From contig CAXIUT010000237.1 of the NCBI GenBank assembly GCA_964035545.1, positions 1-34,084 on the forward strand: 34,084 bases of DNA. The letters run 5' to 3'. Shown in pieces: positions 1 to 33,983 of the stretch. The notes below the pieces were generated by a model that worked only from the letters and a program-made list of their open reading frames with translations, was not told the DNA's origin and ran no database searches. The position numbers were made by a program, and so were the translations under genes. This stretch comes from Bugula neritina (Eukaryota; Animalia; Bryozoa). Each line of letters starts with the position of its first letter. Positions within the stretch are counted from its first letter, which is position 1.

Positions 1-80
1 CAACCCCAACCCCAACCCCAACCCCAACCCCAACCCCAACCCCAACCCCAACCCCAACCCCAACCCCAACCCCAACCCCA
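1..80 (-). repeat. Left telomere, (CCCCAA)n
   Basis: Perfect C4A2 repeats from base 1, followed by about 200 nt of AT-rich spacer; this is the oligohymenophorean (Tetrahymena-type) telomere repeat. Confidence 0.98.
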
Positions 81-15794: not shown

Positions 15795-15955
15795 ATTTAT
15801 AAGTGTTTGAATTATTATTATCAATTAAATACTGGTTGATTAATTTTAAAAGTCAGTGATCTTGATTTAATAATAAAAGTTGATTTGATTGACCAAAGAA
15901 TGCAACTAAATAATAATAGATGAAATTTGTATGGTATAAATATGTGATTTGATGA

Positions 15956-16024
15956 GGGGTTGGGGTTGGGGTTGGGGTTGGGGTTGGGGTTGGGGTTGGG
16001 GTTGGGGTTGGGGTTGGGGTTGGG
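15956..16024 (+). repeat. Internal telomeric tract 1, (GGGGTT)11 GGG
   Basis: 69 nt of perfect telomere repeat between the divergent SH3 and UBA5 genes. Confidence 0.97.
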
Positions 16025-17398: not shown

Positions 17399-20209
17399 TC
17401 AGTATTTGAATGTTTTTTCGAAGTCTTGTTTGGTAACTGGACAGATGGTACTTTTCTATTTTTTGACGCAAGCCTGATGGCAAACATTGGCATTGGGGTA
17501 AACTACAAAATACTAAATAGATATGGCTATTACCTTGTCTGAAATGGGTGTATCGCAGATGCAGCATTTCTTTTTGTAAGTGAACCTGAGGTATGCTCTT
17601 TTGGCTTGAATTAGATTGTGTTAAACGTTAAGCAGGTCCATTTCTGAAAGATGTTTTGATGTATATGTGGCTCTTCTTTCGTGCAAGGTATGGATAATAG
17701 CTGACTAGAGGAACTGATAAATGCCACTATCGTTTTATGTGAGAAGCCAATTATCAGGAATCATTTAAAGAACACTAATTGGATCTAGCTATGGCTCGCT
17801 TGAATGCTTTTTTATAAATGTTATAATATCTTTTTTCCAGAGAACATGAGAATTATTTTTGGAGGATTAGTATGACCGATACATGGCTAGTAGGAGTTTG
17901 AAGTAAATAGTTAGAGTACCTTCTCGATTTCTGGTGCAATATTATTAAGCTTATTTCGTCATCTCTTTGCTGATATATTTTTTTAATGCTTCTTAATGTC
18001 TTTTTTATCTAGAGTATAAAAAGATTTAATCTTATAGTAGCCACTAGCACTTCTATATTCTTTTGAGGATGGGCTAGGATGCATATTTGGATTATGAATT
18101 TCTCAGTAGTTTTCTCATTTTTTATAATTTTTATGCGAATTAGGGCGTTTTTAGTTACTATTTGCTATCTTTGCTGTGAAGATCGAATAAAGCATCGAGA
18201 TATATTAAGAGAAGTTTGGTATGATAGGCTTAAATATCAGTCTTTTTTTAGAATACTATGATCTAGAGATATAATTCAAGATACTTGGTATTTTTATCTA
18301 TTTAAAAATTTTTTATTATCTCTTCTGGTTGGATAAAGTTAGTATCAACCATCTTGAAAAATGTCATGCCTATCTAAGGCCTTTTCTTTAATATCCAGAG
18401 TAGCTTCTTATAGACTTATTGTTTGCTTTAGAATAGAGTTAGCAATCTAACTGCTTATTGGTAGGCTTGGAGTCTTTGAATGTCATCTTTACTATTTTAA
18501 GCAACATATTTCCATCCTTCGAAAGCTTAATCAAGTTTTTAGAAGGCAGTATAGAATCTAGGTTTAAGACTGGCAAATGAGATAATGTTTTAGTTATTTT
18601 TGATAAGACTTTAAAACTAAAGAAATAGTCTTTTACAATAGATATTCTGGTTGTCTTTAAAGAAACGTTACAGAAGAGCAAATGATTACATACTAAGGTG
18701 CAGTCTAATTATATAGTAATCTATTATTTATAGCAATTATTAAGGAGTGGCTGGTGATAATTTTTGTTTCACTAAAGAATATCTAGAACTATTCAGTGCT
18801 ATCTTCACTTTAAATAAATTCATACGACTCAAATACTACTATCGTTTATACTACAAAACTTATTTCAAAAATAGTTTTGATTTCTTTTTTAGTTAGTTTT
18901 CCTATTCTTTGCCTCTGCCTGATTTTTCATTCAAATATTCTACTATTAAGGTATTCATGTATTTATCTGGTTTTATTCCTTTCAAAGAATCTAGTTCTGA
19001 AGTCATTGATAGTTAAGGATACAACAAAACCAACTCTCTGATATCAAAGTTAATGGATCTTAATATTTATCTAGCTTTATCTAGTTCCATTCTACGTAGG
19101 AGAGGCCAAATAGCATTCATTTTCAAATCTTATATTTTTTGTTAGTTATCAGGTCCGCTATTTTGAATTAGTAGATTTAAAGCATCTTCCACTCGACCTC
19201 TTTCTAATAATGCCTTTATTTGGGTCTAAACAGGAATCTTGTAGAGGTAAAGAAGTTCATCTTTGCCAAATATGAAAGGACGACCAGAAGTAATGCCTCG
19301 AATATTAGCTGATAAATTGATCTATTGAACAAAAGAACATCTCTTTGGATCGTCTATTTTAATTATGAATTACAAATGCTAAAAATTTGTAGAGTTCCTT
19401 CGCAGAGGATGAGGCAATAGTTGGTCTAGAGTCCAATATCAATTAATGACCTTTAGGTGGTGAGAGTGATGTTATCTTTTTGGATGGGTTGGAATTGGCT
19501 GTCCATAAATAATCCGATATTGTCCATGAAAAATACCAGTTAGTTGGATCCTGTTACTTTGAAGAAGGGGTTCTTGCTTTGGAGTGGTCCTTTGGCCAAT
19601 GCAAAGTTTTTTTATATGTTGTAGCTTTAATAATCTTTTTTGTAGCTGCATACTATATGTTTTCCATTGAAGCCAACTTTATTAGGTAGCTAGCTTAAAC
19701 TAAACTTTTTAGACTACTCTAATTTTTTAGTTTGAGGGTTCATAAAAGCGATGTAGCCTTCTTTTCTTTTGGAGACTATTGCTATTCCTTGGATAGTTCC
19801 TTATTTTTGAGCTTAATTAACACTAAAATCATGAACCTTCGTCATTGTTTGAATACTTTTTGTGCGATAAGATCTGCTTTTCTTAAGGCAGAATCAACCA
19901 GATAAAGCTTTTAGTCAGCCAATGCTAAAACAGAAGATAGAGATGGATAGCATTGTAGTTTGTCTATCCTATGCTTGGTTATATTTTTAGATTGTTCTTG
20001 AGTAGATTTAGCAATGATGTCAGGATCATTGACTCGAACAGGATAGAAATAGATGTTCCCTCAATATGTTTAGATATACCTTTATCGTCTCCAATATAGA
20101 GAAAGTCATTGAGAACATCAGCTGTTGTTATTTTGTAGTTGAATTACCTTCGAATGGGTCGAATTTCAAACACCTGAATCGCACTATTCTTTTCCTTGCC
20201 TCGGTCCAT
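17399..20209 (-). CDS. Vps39/Vam6/TGFBRAP1-like (CNH domain, helical repeats, C-terminal zinc finger)
   Basis: N-terminal CNH-like LYIGDDKGNIYFY; C-terminal CCICDTPISDKYFVVYPNANVCHQAC...CPVT, typical of the Vps39 family. Several introns of about 20 nt; the middle of the gene was not fully traced. Confidence 0.8.
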
Positions 20210-22281: not shown

Positions 22282-23129
22282 ATGTACGGACAGGGACAAA
22301 GTAAATATTATGACACATAGGTGGTTTTGGAGGACAAGGGCAAGGATTTGGAGGCGGACAAGGACAACAAGGCTTCGGAGGACAAGGACAGCAAGGTTTT
22401 GGAGGACAAGGGCAACAAGGATTTGGAGGACAAGGACAAATGGGAGGTCAGCAAGGATTTGGAGGTCAAGGACAGATGGGAGGACAAGGTTTTGGTAGTC
22501 ATCAGCCACAAGGAATGGGAATGAACCGTTGGAGTCAGGGCAACAATAATCACCATCAAATGAATGGATACACTCAGGTAGATTATAGTCAAGGATGGAA
22601 CCAAAACGTGCACGGCAATATGCTTGAACAGAATGTTAACAAGGTGTTCCAGAAGTACGATAGAAACAATAGTGGTCAACTGGAAGGTCAATAATTTTTT
22701 AACGCTTATAAAGAACTCTGTCTCACTATGGGAATGGCTCCTCCTCAAAACTATCAAGATGTTTGGAACGCTGTTAACCAATGTGATAGCAATAGAGACG
22801 GAAAAGTTAATAAACAAGAAATGCTTGTCTTGTTCAAACAAATTCAAGGAGTGCAAGGGCAAGGACAAGGACAAGGTATGGGAGGGCAGCAGGGTTGGGG
22901 AGGTCAACAAGGAATGGGCCAGCAAGGTATGGGAGGTCAGCAAGGCTGGGGAGGTCAACAAGGTATGGGAGGTCAACAGGGAATGGGAGGACAACAACAA
23001 GGTTGGGGAGGTCAACAAGGAATGGGCGGACAACAACAAGGTTGGGGAGGTCAACAAGGCATGGGAGGACAAGGAGGTCAGCAGGGCTGGGGAGGTCAAC
23101 AAGGTATGGGAGGACAACAAGGTTGGTGA
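22282..23129 (+). CDS. Gly/Gln-rich two-EF-hand protein, paralog 1
   Basis: GFGGQGQ repeats, VDYSQGWN, EF loops DRNNSGQLEGQE and DSNRDGKVNKQE, GGQQGMG/GWG tail; intron at 22301-22320. Confidence 0.88.
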
Positions 23130-23243
23130 TAGTCAAATAGTTACCTTGCTTATTTTAATATTAAAAGCAAATTCCTTTAACTATCTTTTTTAATAGATGG
23201 AAAGAAAGGTGGTTTTTATTTTTAATTAGATTGACAAGATACG

Positions 23244-23815
23244 ATGTTCAACCAAGGACAAGGTATTTCAGTTGATATTTAGGTGGATTCGGAGGAGGTT
23301 ATGGAGGTCAAGGAGGCTTCCAACAACCAGGATTCGGAGGACAACAAGGTGGAATGATCAACCTTGGAGGACAAGGTGGCATGGGCTTCAATAGATGGGG
23401 ACAACAAAACACAGGATACCAGCAAATGAACGGCTTCAATAATGTAGACTACTCAGGAGGATGGAACCCAAGTATTCATGATCAAATGTTGCAAAATAAC
23501 ATTAACATCGTCTTCCAGAGATACGATATGAACATGACTGGCCAACTAGAAGGCCAGGAGTTCTTCAATGGTTACAGAGACCTTTGTTTGATGATGGGAA
23601 TGGCTCCTCCGAATAGTTACCAAGATGTGTGGAATGCAGTCAACCAGTGTGATTCAAACAGAGATGGCAGAGTCAACAAGATGGAAACTTACAACCTTTT
23701 CAAGAGAATTCAAGGGATCAATTCAGGACAGATGATGGGAGGAAATATGGGAATGGGAGGAGGAATGGGAATGGGTATGGGAGGGGGTATGGGAGGAGGA
23801 ATGGGAGGTTGGTGA
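23244..23815 (+). CDS. Gly/Met-rich two-EF-hand protein, paralog 2
   Basis: VDYSGGWNP, DMNMTGQLEGQE and DSNRDGRVNKME; intron at 23263-23282. Confidence 0.88.
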
Positions 23816-23955
23816 TCATCCATTCTATTATCATACAATGATTTTTTAGTTTTTGACTTATTTTGAATTATATTTCTCTCTATATTTTATTGTTTGATTC
23901 TAAGATCTTCTAATAACTAAGTTGTATTTATTTAATTGATAAAATCACACAAGCA

Positions 23956-24722
23956 AGTAAGTTAGTTGTTATTCAGTGCGTCCAGGCTATAATCCTCGAG
24001 ATCCTTATGGTGTTCATGCTCCTCAAGGTCACCAACAGCAAGGAACAGTTATTGTTCACAACAAAAATACAGGAAAAACACAAATTATCATTCCAGGGCA
24101 ACAACAACAACCTCAGTACGGTCATCATCATCAACCACGCCATCAACAACCCCACTATACACCACCTGCACAAGGTCATGGATTCGTCCCACCACCAAGT
24201 AGTGGAGGAGGAATGGGAATGGGAATGAATATGGGAATGAATATGGGAGGAGGAGGAATGGGAGTAGCTATTAATCTTGGAGGAGGAGGCATGGGAGGAG
24301 GCATGGGAGGTGGCATGGGAGGTGGCATGGGAGGTGGCATGGGTTTTAACAAGTGGGCAAATAGTAATGTTAACTACCAGGCAATGCAAGGCTTTCATAA
24401 TGTTGATTATTCAGGAGGATGGAACCCAAATGTGCATGACCAGATGCTTAAAAATAACATCAATACAGTTTACCAGATACATGATATTAATCGTTCGGGG
24501 CAATTGTAAGGACAAGAGTTTTTTAATGCGTATAAAGATCTTTGTTTGAGGATGGGTTTGGCTCCTCCGATGAGCTATCAGGAAGTGTGGGCAAAGGCTT
24601 TGCAGAGTGATACCAATGGAGATGGACAAATAAGTAGGATGGAAATGTTTATGTTGTTCAAAAGTCTACAAGGAGTCAATGCTGGAATGCAAATGCAGTC
24701 AGGAATGGACATGATGTGGTGA
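23956..24722 (+). CDS. Pro/His/Gly/Met-rich two-EF-hand protein, paralog 3
   Basis: Start ATG is formed by splicing A|TG across the intron at 23957-23976; VDYSGGWNP, DINRSGQLEGQE and DTNGDGQISRME. Confidence 0.85.
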
Positions 24723-24759
24723 TTGGTATATCCTTATCTTTAATATCATAATAATTTAA

Positions 24760-24834
24760 GGGGTTGGGGTTGGGGTTGGGGTTGGGGTTGGGGTTGGGGT
24801 TGGGGTTGGGGTTGGGGTTGGGGTTGGGGTTGGG
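24760..24834 (+). repeat. Internal telomeric tract 2, (GGGGTT)12 GGG
   Basis: 75 nt of perfect repeat, starting 37 nt after the stop codon of paralog 3. Confidence 0.97.
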
Positions 24835-24998
24835 ACAAAGGGTAATATATGAAGAACAAAAGCATGATGAACTTCTTGTTTAATGAGATAGTTTACAGCT
24901 AGCATTCTAAACTCTATCAGAATTACCCTTCAAAATATAGCTTAGATTAAAGATATATATGAATCAGAGGATGAGAGGACTATATTGATTGATAAAAG

Positions 24999-25591
24999 AT
25001 GTTTGGTGGTATGGTCTGATTAACGTAGGTGGTATGGGCATGGGCGGCATGGGCATGGGAGGTATGGGAGGAGGCATGGGTATGGGAGGAATGGGAGGCT
25101 TCAATAGGTGGGGAAGTCCTGGTATGAACTATATGGGAATGAACGGATTTTGCAACGTTGACTATTCTGGAGGATGGAATGCAGGTATCCATGACCAGAT
25201 GCTCCAGCAAAAAATATAAATAGTGTTCCAGCGCTATGATATGAACTTTTCTGGACAACTGGAAGGTCAGTAGTTTTTCTATGCTTACCGAGACCTCTGT
25301 CTAATGATGGGAGTTTGTCCTCCAATGAACTATCAAGACGTCTGGGCAGCTGTAGTTCAGAGTGACTACAACGGAAATGGTAGAGTTAGCAGAATTGAGC
25401 TCTTTATGCTCTTCAAACGCATCCAAGGCATTCAAGGAGGAATGGTCTACAACAACTGGAACATGGGAGGAGGAATGGGAGGCATGGGCATGGGAGGCAT
25501 GGGCATGGGAGGCATGGGCATGGGAGGCATGGGCATGGGAGGCATGGGTATGGGAGGCATGGGCATGGGAGGAGGATGGGGAGGTTGGTGA
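24999..25591 (+). CDS. Gly/Met-rich two-EF-hand protein, paralog 4
   Basis: Intron at 25009-25028; VDYSGGWN, DMNFSGQLEGQE and DYNGNGRVSRIE; (GMGMG)n tail ending GWGGW. Confidence 0.88.
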
Positions 25592-25646
25592 TATTCATCT
25601 GCATAACTTTATAGCTTGCTTTTGTTTATTTTTAACTAAAAATAAA

Positions 25647-27458: not shown

Positions 27459-28058
27459 GAATAAGAGTAGGAACTACAAGATAAGAGTAGTAACTACAAG
27501 ATAAAAGTAGTAGCTAAAAGATAGTAGAAACTAAAAGATAGTAGTAACTAAAAGATAAGAGTAATAGACTAAAAGATAGGAGTAATAGACTAAAAGATAG
27601 GAGAAACTAAAAGATAGTAGTAACTAAAAGATAAGAGTAATAGACTAAAAGATAGGAGTAATAGACTAAAAGATAGGAGAAACTAAAAGATAGTAGTAAC
27701 TAAAAGATAAGAGTAATAGACTAAAAGATAGGAGTAATAGACTAAAAGATAGGAGAAACTAAAAGATAGTAGTAACTAAAAGATAAGAGTAATAGACTAA
27801 AAGATAGGAGTAATAGACTAAAAGATAGGAGAAACTAAAAGATAGTAGTAACTAAAAGATAAGAGTAATAGACTAAAAGATAGGAGTAATAGACTAAAAG
27901 ATAGGAGAAACTAAAAGATAGTAGTAACTAAAAGATAAGAGTAATAGACTAAAAGATAGGAGTAATAGACTAAAAGATAGGAGAAACTAAAAGATAGTAG
28001 TAACTAAAAGATAAGAGTAATAGACTAAAAGATAGGAGTAATAGACTAAAAGATAGGA
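27459..28058. repeat. Higher-order minisatellite: about 7 x 76-bp unit made of four CTAAAAGATA-headed subunits (17+21+21+17)
   Basis: Units start at 27531, 27607, 27683, 27759, 27835, 27911 and 27987; degenerate precursor subunits lie at 27459-27530. Confidence 0.95.
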
Positions 28059-30384: not shown

Positions 30385-33007
30385 TCAATGATTTAGTCCT
30401 TTTACCTTATTGCTTCTATCTTTAAAAGCATCTTAGATTTTTATTTTACCTAAAATACCTCCAGAACCATCTCTTCTAAATAATTCCTTCATCAAAGAAG
30501 ACTCCTTCCTTTCTTTCACCAAAGAAGACTCCTTCCTTTCTTTCACCAGAGAAGACTCCTTCTTTTCTTTCACCAAAGAAGACTCCTTCCTTTCTTTCAC
30601 CAGAGAAGACTCCTTTTTAGACTTATTTAAATTCTCTTTAGATGTCTTTATTTATCCTTTCTATTTGAAGTTTATCAAGTTAGAATTAAATTATTTAGCT
30701 TAAGCTTTCTTTTAGATAATTTTGTATAATCCTAGTCTTTTATCCGAACATACTTAATCTAGGCAGTCATTTGATTGACGTTTGCTTTCATCTATCATCT
30801 AGGTCTTTGAACTGTTTTGGACATTGTACTTTCTACGGTTGAAAAGTAAGTCGTTGATTGATCGAGGTAGGTTTTTACTTGAAACCTTTTGAATTAATCC
30901 AGAACTACCTGTACAAACATCACTGCCTCTTTCTTTATTAATATAAAAATACTTTTAAAGCTTTTTATTTATGTCATAGTAGGCATGTTCTTTGAAACTT
31001 TTACAGAAAAAAATTATTAGTTGAATCTTTAATCAACTTTTTTTTAATTAAATTATTTTTGAGGGCAATTTTGAGTACAATTTTCTAATGTTTCTTCTAT
31101 TTATCTTTTCCACTTATCTTTTAATAGTATATTTTTATCATAAAGTTTGACATGTTAAAGGTAGTTAGCCATAAGTTATTTTCCTAGGTGTCGATAGCTA
31201 TCATTAGTACACTGTTTGTAGATAGACTATTCTCCGTCATCTTCTTGTGATGGCTAGAAATGTGAGACATTAAGTTGATAAACCAAAGCTTTAGGAAACA
31301 ACTAATTGATAACACAACAAAAGGACTAATTGCTATTTTTTTAAAAGAAGAAACTGTCTTCAAATGAAATCAATTTGTTCCTTCTTGATAATACAAAAGG
31401 AAATATTCTACTGTCTTCACATTGCTACTCATCATTTCTGACGCCTAAAATAGACGAAATTAATCTATCTAGATAAAATATTACTGTTGATGATTGGATG
31501 CTAAGTTGAGACACATGGCTATAGGATGCTGTTTATTAATATTAACCATCCATTCTTTTAGACAGTGTAGTTCTGATTCATATAGAGCATGTGGCTGCTT
31601 CCAGCATTTCTGCAAATCACTGCCTGATAAATTAGATGAACTACTCCCAAATCGAATGCCATCAATATTGAACCTATCCAAATGCTTATTTATCCTACTT
31701 TGCAAAAAGATTATAATTTTGATTAATATACTATTAATAAATAATAATCAATCAATGATATTTATTTTCTCCTTAATTCTTAAATTTTATACCTTTTGAT
31801 TCTTTTTGGGGTTGGGGTTGGGGTTGGGGTTGGGGTTGGGGTTGGGGTTGGGGTTGGGGTTGGGGTTGGGGTTGGGGTTGGGGTTGGGGTTGGGGTTGGG
31901 GTTGGGGTTGGGGTTGGTTTTCTTTCGAATCACATAGCCATTGACAATAGACCCACAAATAGTCTTGCCTATTTCTACCTTTTAGACTTTAGTTAGGCCT
32001 CTTACTTTCTTGAGAATAGCTCTACTAAAATATTTCTAGCATTATAGAGTACCATATGAAGAATCTAAAGCAAATGCTAAGACATCTCTTTTGTTTTTTA
32101 CTTTGATTTAAAATGTTAAATTATAGTACAACTAATCTCTCTTGCTCTAGATCTCCATTTACGATTTTCTGAAACTAATATTCTCTCCACAAAGATGCCA
32201 TCCTTAGCTAAAAGGTTCCTTCCCTGTTTCTCTAAACCCATTCAATTGACAGTACTTGACTCTCATTCCTTTTTCAAACATTTTTCCCATATCCTTGGTC
32301 TACTTATCTCTAGAAGTACCAAATTCATGATTTTAAAGGTGTAGTAGCCTTCTTGTCCAAATTATACTGAAAAGTAAAACCATCCGACCTCTTTGCAACT
32401 GTTGACATCATTCTGTAAAAATAGTTCGTATTCATATGGATCTTTCTAAATATGATCATAGTTACTCGAAGAGCCGCAAATAAGTTGCCTCCTTAGAAGC
32501 TAGAACAAAAGGTAGGATCGAACGAACACCCTCTGTTATTTTTGCTGTCTGGTAGTAAAGATCTACGACTGTTATCAGCCATTTGTAGCCCTAAGTTAGC
32601 AGGAAAGGATGTTTATTGATATATTTGTTGGAAAGGCACATAAAATCCTGTCATTATTCTTGTTCTTAGGTTAATGTCTTTTTGCATGTTGTATTAACTA
32701 TTATCGAACTTCAAAAAAACTATCTGTTCTGATTTACTTTTTAGGTAGTTTCCTAAATAATCAAAGGAGTTAAATGTTTAGCAATATTTAATTAACTAAG
32801 TGTTTCTAGTTTTGGGTGGATTGAATTGAAAGTTATTGAGTCTTTGATCATTTTTCGTTCTGCATTAAAACAAAAGTACATCAGCTTGAAGGTAGGTATT
32901 ACATCTGGAGAGTACTTTTCATTGATGAGTTAATTGGCTGGAAGACGTTTCAGCATAGGCTGTAACTATTAAAATTCAGATTAAGGCTGTTTTCCCTCTC
33001 TTTGCAT
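30385..33007 (-). CDS. Cytosolic carboxypeptidase (M14D, Nna1/CCP)-like gene, catalytically degenerate and interrupted by an internal telomere tract
   Basis: N-half (33007-31918): [45 protein letters not shown]-half (about 31720-30385): [39 protein letters not shown]. Several 20-nt introns. Confidence 0.8.
30493..30616 (-). repeat. Coding 27-bp repeat (KESSLVKER, about 5 copies) in the CCP-like tail
   Basis: GAAGACTCCTTCCTTTCTTTCACCA(A/G)A units visible on the + strand. Confidence 0.85.
31808..31917 (+). repeat. Internal telomeric tract 3, (GGGGTT)18 GG
   Basis: 110 nt of perfect repeat inside the CCP-like gene. Confidence 0.97.
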
Positions 33008-33277
33008 TTAGAATATAGAATATAGATAACATTTAATATTAGAAAGTTACCTAAATAACTTAAAATAAACAACGAAAAAAAACATCAAAAATGAATGGAA
33101 CAAAAAGAAATGCTAATAGCAGAAAATTTAGTTCACCTTTAAGAACTTTCCTTTTCTATAAAAGAAAACGGATAGAATAGTTTCATGATTTAAAATAAAA
33201 CTTTGATTTAAATAATATCTTCAATAATAGGTCTATTAAAAGGATCTTATGAGATATTAAATCTCAAATACTTATAA

Positions 33278-33706
33278 ATGTTATTTAATTATTTTAACTC
33301 AGAACTCTCAGTTCAACCATCCTAGTAATCCACTAGACGACTTACTTCTTTATCATAGACACCTCTCTATCAAATAATCATCTGTCTGGGAAGTATTTGT
33401 CTTCTTCTCATTGCACTGATTGTCTACTACCAACACAAGCATGCGCCTTCAACCCTCCAATTCACTGAATTTAACAGTCAATATGTTGGAAAATAGAGTA
33501 CTAGGTCAAACAGTTAAGCAGAATTTCCTAACTTTGGAGTCGATATTCTTAAAGAACCTAAATTTGAGCCATAAGAACAACAATAAAGCTAAAATTCACC
33601 AAGAACAAAAAGAAGAAAAAGAAAAGTAGATAGAATATAAAGAAAGTAACAAAATAATAATAGCTTAGATCTGACTCCTCCCACTTCTCTGAAAAATTAA
33701 AACTGA
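33278..33706 (+). CDS. Hypothetical single-pass membrane protein (142 aa)
   Basis: ATG-to-TGA ORF with TM segment IIICLGSICLLLIALIVYY and a charged tail. Confidence 0.55.
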
Positions 33707-33983
33707 TAACTTTATAAAATGATAGACAGCAAAAAAATTATTGAAAAGTGCTTTTCGCTGTTGTTGTTTTTAAAGAATCAAACATACAACATTTGAAAAA
33801 CATAGTTTAGCTTTTTTTATAATCTGTATGGTATTTTATAAATTAAGTTTTTTTTAATCAAGAAAAGATCTAATATAAAACGGAGTCAGGATTTGTGGGT
33901 TCATTAAAATATTGTAGTTAGATATGTTATAGCATACTAAAATAACAATAGTATTAAAATGGATTTATACTATAATAATTCGA

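Follow-up and report, generated by a model that had tools for sequence, protein, structure and literature searches.

Heterogeneous telomere-addition sites are familiar from ciliates, in the telomere-addition regions of Paramecium and the alternative fragmentation of Oxytricha nanochromosomes. Telomere healing and fragmentation have been described in Paramecium (PMC13076228). In vertebrates, interstitial telomeric sequences are explained by telomerase insertion at double-strand-break repair (reviewed in PMC6410037). The locus reported here, a telomere tract between the two halves of a gene on a ciliate chromosome, invites comparison with both. Read as traces of alternative chromosome ends, this tract and its counterparts elsewhere in the assembly would share with the Paramecium and Oxytricha sites the nested forms with a common part, whose ends lie between a few hundred bases and several kilobases from one another, the de novo telomeres on AT-rich DNA, the occasional position inside genes and the clustering of sites within about 1 kb (here in contig C61). 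They differ from those of Paramecium and spirotrichs in the genetic code (TAA/TAG as Glu) and the pure G4T2 repeats, and from those of Paramecium and Oxytricha in being known only indirectly, through tails incorporated into a consensus. With the vertebrate sequences the locus shares a tract between unique colinear flanks. The vertebrate tracts, however, are short, present in every copy and found on both strands of any assembly, whereas those described here have full telomere length and the phase of a natural terminus, appear to replace sequence rather than add to it, and show an assembler-linked strand bias.

A further analogy is technical, and comes from overhang-tolerant string-graph layouts and template stitching in long-read assembly. 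Artefacts in which an overhang is carried into a contig are directional, with one sign per contig orientation, replace about the same length of true sequence, need only one read and recur where reads end in sequence that through reads do not have; the internal tracts would share all of these properties. A prefix-copying layout of the miniasm or hifiasm type would give the opposite sign, and only a scheme that appends the extension would give the sign seen here.

The window, the whole 34-kb stretch of DNA analysed (34,084 nt), is an entire small, telomere-capped macronuclear chromosome of a ciliate, contig C246. The ciliate is a cobiont or contaminant inside an animal genome assembly. Its nuclear code is of the peritrich type, in which TAA and TAG encode Glu. 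When the ciliate SDHA is aligned with that of the host, TAR codons fall on host Glu residues at TEGCRGEGG, IEIREGR and GES, while two further TAR sites stand opposite N and A; the earlier reading of TAA/TAG as Gln is corrected by these conserved Glu positions. A micronuclear contig, or a macronuclear copy of a micronuclear chromosome in the assembly, was considered and rejected, the large chromosomes being animal, with the standard code and multi-exon genes. An Rfam search of the window gave no match, a genome-wide search found the Tetrahymena breakage sequence TAAACCAACCTCTTT to be absent, a metagenome scan with a 40-mer from the right flank gave no match, and a search for contigs encoding four ORFs of the window, one of the four entered with wrong coordinates, found none.

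Table 1. Telomeric tracts and parts of the CCP-like gene in the window.
Feature	Position	Strand	Basis or remark
Left terminal telomere, (C4A2)n	1-80	+	TRF, 13.3 perfect copies; sequence
Internal G4T2 tract 1	15956-16024	+	Polarity as right end; AT-rich on the left, abrupt non-telomeric start on the right
Internal G4T2 tract 2	24760-24834	+	Gly/Met/Gln-repeat protein gene ends (TGA) 37 nt before it; next tandem paralogue to the right
Last exon seen of the CCP-like gene, ...LNLASNH...	31373-31673	-	Aligns to paralogues' NPDG...DLNR...DLHxH; TGA stop at 31372-31370
Predicted 25-nt intron, GTAGG...GGATAG	31674-31698	-	Removal gives a peptide aligning to paralogues' NFYIVPM-INPDG
Exon piece, last recognisably CCP-like part of left half	31699-31730	-	Alignments to L020, L022 and L026
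AT-rich 75 nt from recognisable exon to tract	31731-31805	.	Inferred
Internal G4T2 tract 3	31806-31917	+	TRF: 112 nt, 100 % perfect 6-nt array, 18.7 copies, ends ...GGGGTTGG
CCP-like exon ending at tract	31918-32299	-	Reading frame and alignment
20-nt intron GTACTTCTAGAGATAAGTAG	32300-32319	-	Frame and alignment
CCP N-domain exon	32320-32445	-	Frame and alignment
20-nt intron GTAACTATGATCATATTTAG	32446-32465	-	Frame and alignment
Exon with possible start codon at 32582; more exons upstream possible	32466-32582	-	Frame and alignment
Right terminal telomere, (G4T2)n	33986-34084	+	TRF; sequence

C246 carries three internal tracts, all co-oriented, the third of which lies in the region of a CCP-like gene. 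Here the original observation of a (GGGGTT)18 tract of 110 nt is borne out by TRF (Table 1). The sequence also confirms the minus-strand frame that stays open into the tract and the resumption of coding sequence, on the same strand and in an unchanged genomic frame, once about 130 nt of AT-rich DNA have been passed. Both halves align, in the right order and on the same strand, to CCP-like paralogues of the same ciliate, six of which were compared by local alignment (scores of at most 147 for the N-domain and at most 106 for the core). The right half matches the paralogues' N-domain (FESGNL...WFYF...) and the left half their NPDG...DLNR...DLHxH. This is the order of the M14D (Nna1/CCP) family, in which N-terminal beta-sandwich motifs (FxSxFESGNL...WFYF) are followed by the M14 core. 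One single-copy gene supplies both flanks, which are colinear within it, and the junction is locus-specific, as had been proposed; since both flanks are single-copy in the assembly, the halves are not parts of two other intact paralogues. A random read chimera was rejected, the flanks being colinear. Tract 2 likewise lies between tandem paralogues.

The conserved segment of about 60 aa expected between the two blocks is absent: judged by the paralogues, 31-59 residues are missing, including the HPGE (HxxE) zinc motif. The frames on both sides fit one uninterrupted gene, in which an overwritten stretch would hold about 42-56 codons. A peptide proposed as a remnant of the segment, IIFLQSRIN, is not one: without the 25-nt intron (31698-31674), the exon can be aligned with NFYIVPM-INPDG of the paralogues. 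What look like frameshifts in the N-domain are 20-nt introns, and a pseudogene made by frameshift was rejected for the same reason. The gene differs from other CCPs in its zinc- and substrate-binding residues. The assembly lacks the HxxE stretch, GNxR is represented by GSSSS, with S in place of the arginine, and DLHxH reads NLASNH, with A and N in place of the histidines, so that neither the zinc ligands (HxxE and the distal His) nor the GNxR arginine are seen. Judged from these residues, the CCP-like gene has the look of an inactive paralogue even if complete. Its short stop-free pieces had no significant match in Pfam or the PDB; a bacterial CCP (4a37) reached an E-value of only 0.45.

The AT-rich stretch at 31731-31805 is either true gene sequence, comprising a 62-nt GT..AG intron and 13 nt of exon, or special to capped molecules; run data suggest that its upper 57 nt (31749-31805) may be missing from the main form too. 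One of the explanations first offered amounts to tract and AT-rich DNA genuinely belonging to the gene and being removed from the RNA like an intron, so that the mRNA rejoins the halves. On the minus strand, a GT (31792) and a TAG (ending at 31731) could bound the 62-nt intron beside the tract. Known introns here, however, measure 20-25 nt, and no GT..AG pair enclosing the tract restores the missing 31-59 residues, splicing being unable to supply the HxxE segment. Tracts of the same kind are also seen between genes (tract 2) and adjoining N gaps, and none of the RNA runs searched contained the locus. Removal at the RNA level is thus extremely improbable.

Tract 3 is one instance of a widespread pattern, with an estimated 200-260 internal tracts in the ciliate contigs of the assembly. 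Internal tracts measure 58-112 nt at the first nine loci and 39-130 nt across all sampled junctions, and termini 56-105 nt. Most internal tracts end in ...TTGGG, and seven of nine contig termini end in the same phase; length and end phase together point to the ends of capped reads. To the left of the tracts, the adjacent 100 nt have an A+T content of 0.69-0.89, one telomere-cluster locus excepted. With its 112 nt, tract 3 has the normal length, the natural end phase and the preceding AT-rich DNA of an alternative telomere-addition site. Most likely it is the telomere tail of a capped read carried into the consensus, at a real telomere-addition site at about 31805/31806. In C231 a tract lies within the variable presequence of SDHA.

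The orientation of the tracts follows the strand of the assembly. Genome-wide, junctions of the form (G4T2)4GGG[A/C] number 181 forward and 20 reverse, against 7 and 2 for a control pattern, and among the matches listed (the first 100) 53 contigs have '+' junctions only, four '-' only and seven both. Some reverse matches are irregular terminal tracts adjoining N gaps. Contig strand is arbitrary, so a real structure should show both orientations equally, and a bias of 181:20 argues against one. About 10 % of the junctions nevertheless have the reverse orientation, and four or more contigs carry '-' junctions only, which an artefact of assembly could accommodate only with contig flips after assembly. 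An overwrite of equal length predicts that the reading frame is kept across a junction, and 34 junctions were examined for this in two ways: open-frame runs gave three same-phase junctions (L042, L043 and L049) and one or two of different phase, which is not significant, and a codon-usage model trained on long ORFs, too weak for this use, gave no confident pairs.

A rival reading is that tract 3 is a real interstitial telomere, carried by at least a sub-population of macronuclear copies. On this account telomerase capped the left fragment, whose telomere end was then fused in the cell with the broken right fragment, either through end-joining or because the telomere primed synthesis on a sister copy, and the HxxE segment was deleted in the process. 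This corresponds to two of the explanations first offered, a break healed and re-ligated during macronuclear development and imprecise IES elimination healed by a telomere. In its favour, the flanks are colinear halves of one single-copy gene. Telomere-primed copying towards the right end predicts co-orientation within a contig, and fusion of a telomere to a break would also yield the natural end phase. Against this stand the strand bias, unexpected of any real structure when contig strand is arbitrary (181:20; 53 contigs against 4), and both the 31- and 96-nt pieces that separate full-length tracts and the tracts abutting 200 N, which would be hard to make in a cell. The main path in two runs with an identical flank moreover crosses the boundary without a telomere (see below), although contigs are unable to prove absence. 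We regard a real interstitial telomere at this locus as unlikely.

Those short pieces and N gaps come from three contigs: in C15 and C21 tracts run straight into 200 N, and C61 has four tracts spaced only 96, 645 and 31 nt apart, an arrangement that fits successive capped reads from a zone of variable telomere addition. They also bear on whether two contigs, 1-31917 (a short capped form) and 31918-34084, were joined without a gap after assembly, when Hi-C contacts of neighbouring sequence guided scaffolding, gap closing or curation, the missing segment being lost in overlap trimming. The junctions of the same type with 200 N in C15 and C21 show that scaffolding did join telomere-ended pieces, and Hi-C contacts along the longer form would produce the colinearity. 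Pieces of 31-96 nt are, however, too short to have been separate contigs, and the junction has neither Ns nor a duplicated overlap. Scaffolders also orient pieces either way, which leaves the strand bias unaccounted for. Joining after assembly is therefore very unlikely.

Independent contigs from two runs, X1 and X2, cross the right-hand boundary of the tract. They are k=31 Logan contigs, from which rare variants are dropped, and speak for the main form rather than every molecule; they are tied to the assembly's own data only by identity of sequence, a single study and the year (2023). In X1, a 3299-nt contig matches the window from 33902 down to 31928 with zero mismatches and then continues for 1324 nt; in X2, a 435-nt contig, likewise a perfect match to the flank, extends 209 nt to the left of 31928. 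Both were classed as partly not fitting the window, not as running off its end. A k=31 graph cannot cross a 112-nt perfect 6-mer repeat common to all telomeres, so the paths past the boundary cannot contain a tract of 31 nt or more and are non-telomeric, as judged by the extent of the contigs and this argument. The two contigs speak against single molecules with unique sequence on both sides of the tract, which an interstitial telomere would require, though a minority of such molecules may exist. Through molecules are implied by these contigs, and capped molecules only by the tract in the assembly.

Sampled words point the same way. Between 30900 and 32900 their share is 0.90 in X1 and 0.88 in X2, about what would be left if all words touching roughly 31720-31917 were missing. 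Five of the six sampled words from 31888-31990, of which at most one starts within the junction, are present in both runs, and one sampled junction word is missing from both. If its path has the length of the window, the X1 contig ends at 30604, one base to the right of 30603, the single A/G-variable site of a 27-nt repeat and a natural graph break. This suggests an overwrite of equal length; the length of the contig is just as compatible with a path that is 18 nt shorter and stops at 30586, the exact k-mer break. The depth of X2 halves to the left of 32124 and to the right of 33540, which hints at further chromosome forms.

We consider it probable that the internal tract is an assembly artefact marking an alternative chromosome end, its consensus having merged capped and uncapped molecules. 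The chromosome would exist in nested forms, with long copies reaching 33986 and shorter copies stopping at other sites of telomere addition, near 15955, 24759 and 31805, the last inside the CCP-like gene, and the tract would not be on any molecule that continues into the right flank. In the proposed sequence of events, the contig would be built from left to right, a telomere-ended read would be used to its very end, and the next read would be appended by layout position. The 112-nt telomere tail, perhaps together with as much as 57 nt preceding it, would thereby overwrite an approximately equal length of true sequence, the sequence that would have encoded the missing HxxE segment. We infer from the assembly and run data that capped and through molecules coexisted in the sequenced sample, that the overwrite was of about equal length, and which assembler step caused it. 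How the tail survived polishing is hard to account for if most molecules run through. Of the four explanations first put forward, a consensus artefact is the one favoured by the strand bias, the molecule-end character of the tracts, the X1 and X2 paths and the missing word. Break and re-ligation, or imprecise IES elimination healed by a telomere, leave the strand bias unexplained, and removal at the RNA level gains no support.

Should all of the tracts be real instead, which we judge distinctly unlikely, macronuclear chromosomes would hold some two hundred full-length, co-oriented interstitial telomeres, sometimes inside genes. They would arise where a capped truncated copy is joined to the downstream portion of a sister copy or primes its copying. 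The strand bias would then need a separate technical cause, and the process would be a new way of rebuilding somatic chromosomes.

If the tract is instead a product of assembly, there is no telomere inside the gene, and the roughly 200 'interstitial telomeres' of the assembly are the same artefact and not biology. Where a sample holds many nested capped linear molecules, true sequence can be replaced by the telomere tail of a read, and coding segments can vanish unnoticed, as would have happened here to the zinc-binding motif of a carboxypeptidase-like gene. To our knowledge, the macronuclear architecture of this ciliate lineage is little described. As markers, the tracts would give, to the base, true end points of some chromosome copies in a ciliate whose code is of the peritrich type, and they suggest that alternative fragmentation is dense, occurring at intervals of a few kilobases and in some cases within genes.

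The assembly that holds this contig (C246, 34,084 nt) comprises 216 Mb in 321 contigs. It is an animal genome that also contains a ciliate cobiont in several hundred contigs capped by telomeres, because large contigs such as C1 (35.6 Mb) and C2 (33.6 Mb) use the standard code and carry multi-exon genes, whereas in-frame TAA and TAG are abundant in the genes of many small contigs. C1 to C6, six animal chromosomes of about 35 Mb with the same code and gene structure, were compared with small contigs in stretches L010-L034. In the ciliate SDHA gene (C231:18670-19600, L027), TAA and TAG codons align with conserved glutamates of host SDHA (L029-L034), and the nuclear code is therefore of the peritrich type, with TAR encoding Glu and TGA as sole stop. 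Ciliate introns are tiny (20-25 nt, GTA...TAG) and mimic frameshifts if read naively, both in the window and at C231 around 18643-18662. Three host contigs begin with satellites (C1:1-10000, C2:1-10000 and C245:1-10000), one of them a repeat of about 25 nt that is rich in AT (13% G+C); C2 begins with (AAAATTT)n.

Telomeric tracts and introns of contig C246
Feature	Position	Strand	Remark
Left terminal telomere, (C4A2)n	1-80
Internal G4T2 tract 1	15956-16024		perfect; right-end polarity
Internal G4T2 tract 2	24760-24834		perfect; right-end polarity
25-nt intron	31698-31674	minus	immediately ahead of FNIDG
Internal G4T2 tract 3	31806-31917		perfect; right-end polarity
20-nt intron	32319-32300	minus	CCP-like gene, upstream of tract 3 junction
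20-nt intron	32465-32446	minus	CCP-like gene, upstream of tract 3 junction
Right terminal telomere, (G4T2)n	33986-34084

In the assembled sequence, tract 3 interrupts a CCP-like (M14D carboxypeptidase) gene. As the original prediction held, an open minus-strand frame reaches the tract, and the gene resumes on that strand past the tract and some 130 nt of AT-rich sequence; it does so in the same genomic frame. The ciliate has six CCP-like paralogues to which the two halves align in the correct order. Apparent frameshifts upstream were rejected, being the two 20-nt introns. With introns removed, the right half starts MADNSRR and the left half contains DLQKCW...LNLASNH. Measured against the six paralogues, 31-59 residues are lost at the tract, including the HPGE zinc motif. 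Removal of the tract at the RNA level could not restore these residues, which makes that explanation extremely improbable. In the visible part the arginine of GNxR and the histidines of DLHxH are already gone, so that, regardless of the tract, the sequence suggests an inactive paralogue. Both flanks are single-copy across the whole assembly.

Elsewhere in the window, three tandem paralogous genes (22300-25600) encode Gly/Met/Gln-rich repeat proteins (GGQGQQGF..., GMGMGG...), and the interval separating the second from the third contains tract 2, 37 nt past a TGA stop. A 76-nt array of 7.8 copies with 98% identity occupies 27466-28058, and a coding repeat of 27 nt in 4.9 copies (KEGVFFGER...) occupies 30484-30615, its units varying at one A/G site.

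Internal tracts are strongly biased in sign across the ciliate contigs. The 36-mer (G4T2)6 has 5054 forward and 2716 reverse matches assembly-wide; about 300 left termini would account for the latter, and the forward excess corresponds to some 200-260 internal tracts. The sequence (G4T2)4GGG with A or C next to it, a pattern restricted to internal junctions, has 181 forward and 20 reverse matches (control pattern, 7 and 2), some of the reverse matches being irregular terminal tracts adjoining N gaps. Among the first 100 junction matches, 53 contigs are forward-only, 4 reverse-only and 7 both, and by our own arithmetic the two-sided binomial probability of 53 versus 4 is about 2e-12. The strand in which a contig is written is arbitrary for biology, and reverse complementation converts internal G4T2 to C4A2; any real structure is therefore expected equally in both signs. 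The bias thus ties the internal tracts to the process by which contigs were written.

The tracts also look like the ends of reads. They measure 58-112 nt at the first nine loci examined and 39-130 nt over all sampled junctions, compared with terminal tracts of 56-105 nt. Of nine contig termini, seven finish ...TTGGG (left contig ends mostly open with CCCAACCCC), and the majority of internal tracts share this phase: the 201 junctions with GGG before A or C lie far above one sixth of all internal tracts. The left side of each tract is AT-rich, like true ends; the right side often opens abruptly within coding sequence. On C14, the first base past an internal tract is also the first base of a tRNA-Leu(UAA) gene (18552 onward), which may be chance; the gene contains an 18-nt intron and is detected by ARAGORN with the intron option only. 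At the right end of C61 (11454-12555), four G4T2 tracts fall within 1.1 kb at spacings of 96, 645 and 31 nt, a cluster resembling a region in which the telomere-addition site varies, recorded by successive capped reads, i.e. reads ending in telomere; such spacing would be very hard to build inside a cell. Runs of 200 N directly follow a tract in C15 (26730-27017) and C21 (46059-49086). In C21 the gap is flanked by telomere tracts, in the order G4T2, N200, C4A2, so scaffolding joined capped ciliate chromosomes end to end. A related artefact, concatenation of separate contigs without a gap, would accommodate these N-gap cases and is at odds with the tiny pieces between tracts; we regard it as quite improbable for tract 3.

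Contigs from two sequencing runs of one 2023 study, X1 and X2, bear directly on the junction. Sampled 31-mers of 30900-32900 are present at 0.90 in X1 and 0.88 in X2, and we infer that these runs are linked to the data behind the assembly. Three further studies, filed under different organism names, have runs that contain parts of the same interval, which suggests that the ciliate is associated with several hosts or samples. The absent 10-12% of words approximate the number touching 31720-31917; within 31888-31990, five of six sampled words are found in each run, at most one sampled word starting in the junction part. Contigs were compared over 31860-33985. An X1 contig of 3299 nt runs from 33902 down to 31928 with zero mismatches and then continues for 1324 further letters, while a 435-nt X2 contig has 209 letters left of 31928; the direction of record numbering was set by a third X1 contig (6663 nt) with a loose end before 33873. 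These contigs are k=31 de Bruijn graph output of the Logan pipeline. Such a graph admits each k-mer only once per contig, so its contigs cannot span a 112-nt perfect 6-mer repeat common to all telomeres. Since the contigs nevertheless pass its boundary, the right flank runs on into non-telomeric sequence in the main form of both runs, and of the main form only, because contigs omit rare variants and could miss a tract-bearing minority. X2 contig depth is about 128-148 over 32124-33540 and 60-70 on both sides, with branch points at 32153, 33540 and 33873, a pattern that points to a second allele or, alternatively, to additional chromosome forms with that 1.4 kb in common. The rival reading, that a sub-population carries a genuine interstitial telomere, fits the colinear flanks and the co-orientation of tracts within a contig, but conflicts with the assembler-linked sign, the 31-nt pieces between tracts and the main path in X1 and X2, and is accordingly unlikely.

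We therefore favour the last of the four options in the original prediction, a consensus merging capped and uncapped molecules, to which the sign bias, end phase and run contigs point; its reading of the junction as locus-specific stands. Part of the chromosome copies would truly end near 31805 with a telomere, and others would continue to 33986. The consensus builder would follow one read until it terminates and go on with whatever the following read adds, placed according to the layout, so that the capped tail is retained and an equal length of the through read is skipped. Only tails pointing along the building direction would be affected. Such overwriting would produce the sign bias, natural end phase, colinear flanks, lost coding segment and tract clusters. 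The observed sign is what template stitching would give; a prefix-copying read layout would give the opposite. Against overwriting, about one tenth of junctions carry the other sign, and survival of the tail through polishing is puzzling if most molecules are through forms.

The X1 contig would end at 30604 if equal in length to the window, next to 30603, the sole position at which the 27-nt coding repeat varies (A/G) and a natural branch point. This suggests that the true junction sequence is as long as the window's, the tract having overwritten rather than inserted; a path 18 nt shorter, ending at the exact k-mer break 30586, fits as well. The X2 contig (209 = 30 shared + 169 + 10) would put the length of the replaced stretch at 169 nt, diverging at 31748 (equal length) or, on the shorter path, at 31730 directly after a TAG. 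It may hold about 50-56 codons and one 20-nt intron, or 42 codons if 31731-31792 is a 62-nt intron, all within the range predicted from the paralogues. Under either length, the reading frames would be consistent with a single unbroken gene. The intragenic telomere is most likely not a real feature; the real element is probably an alternative site of telomere addition, one of many in this ciliate, inside a degenerate CCP-like gene.
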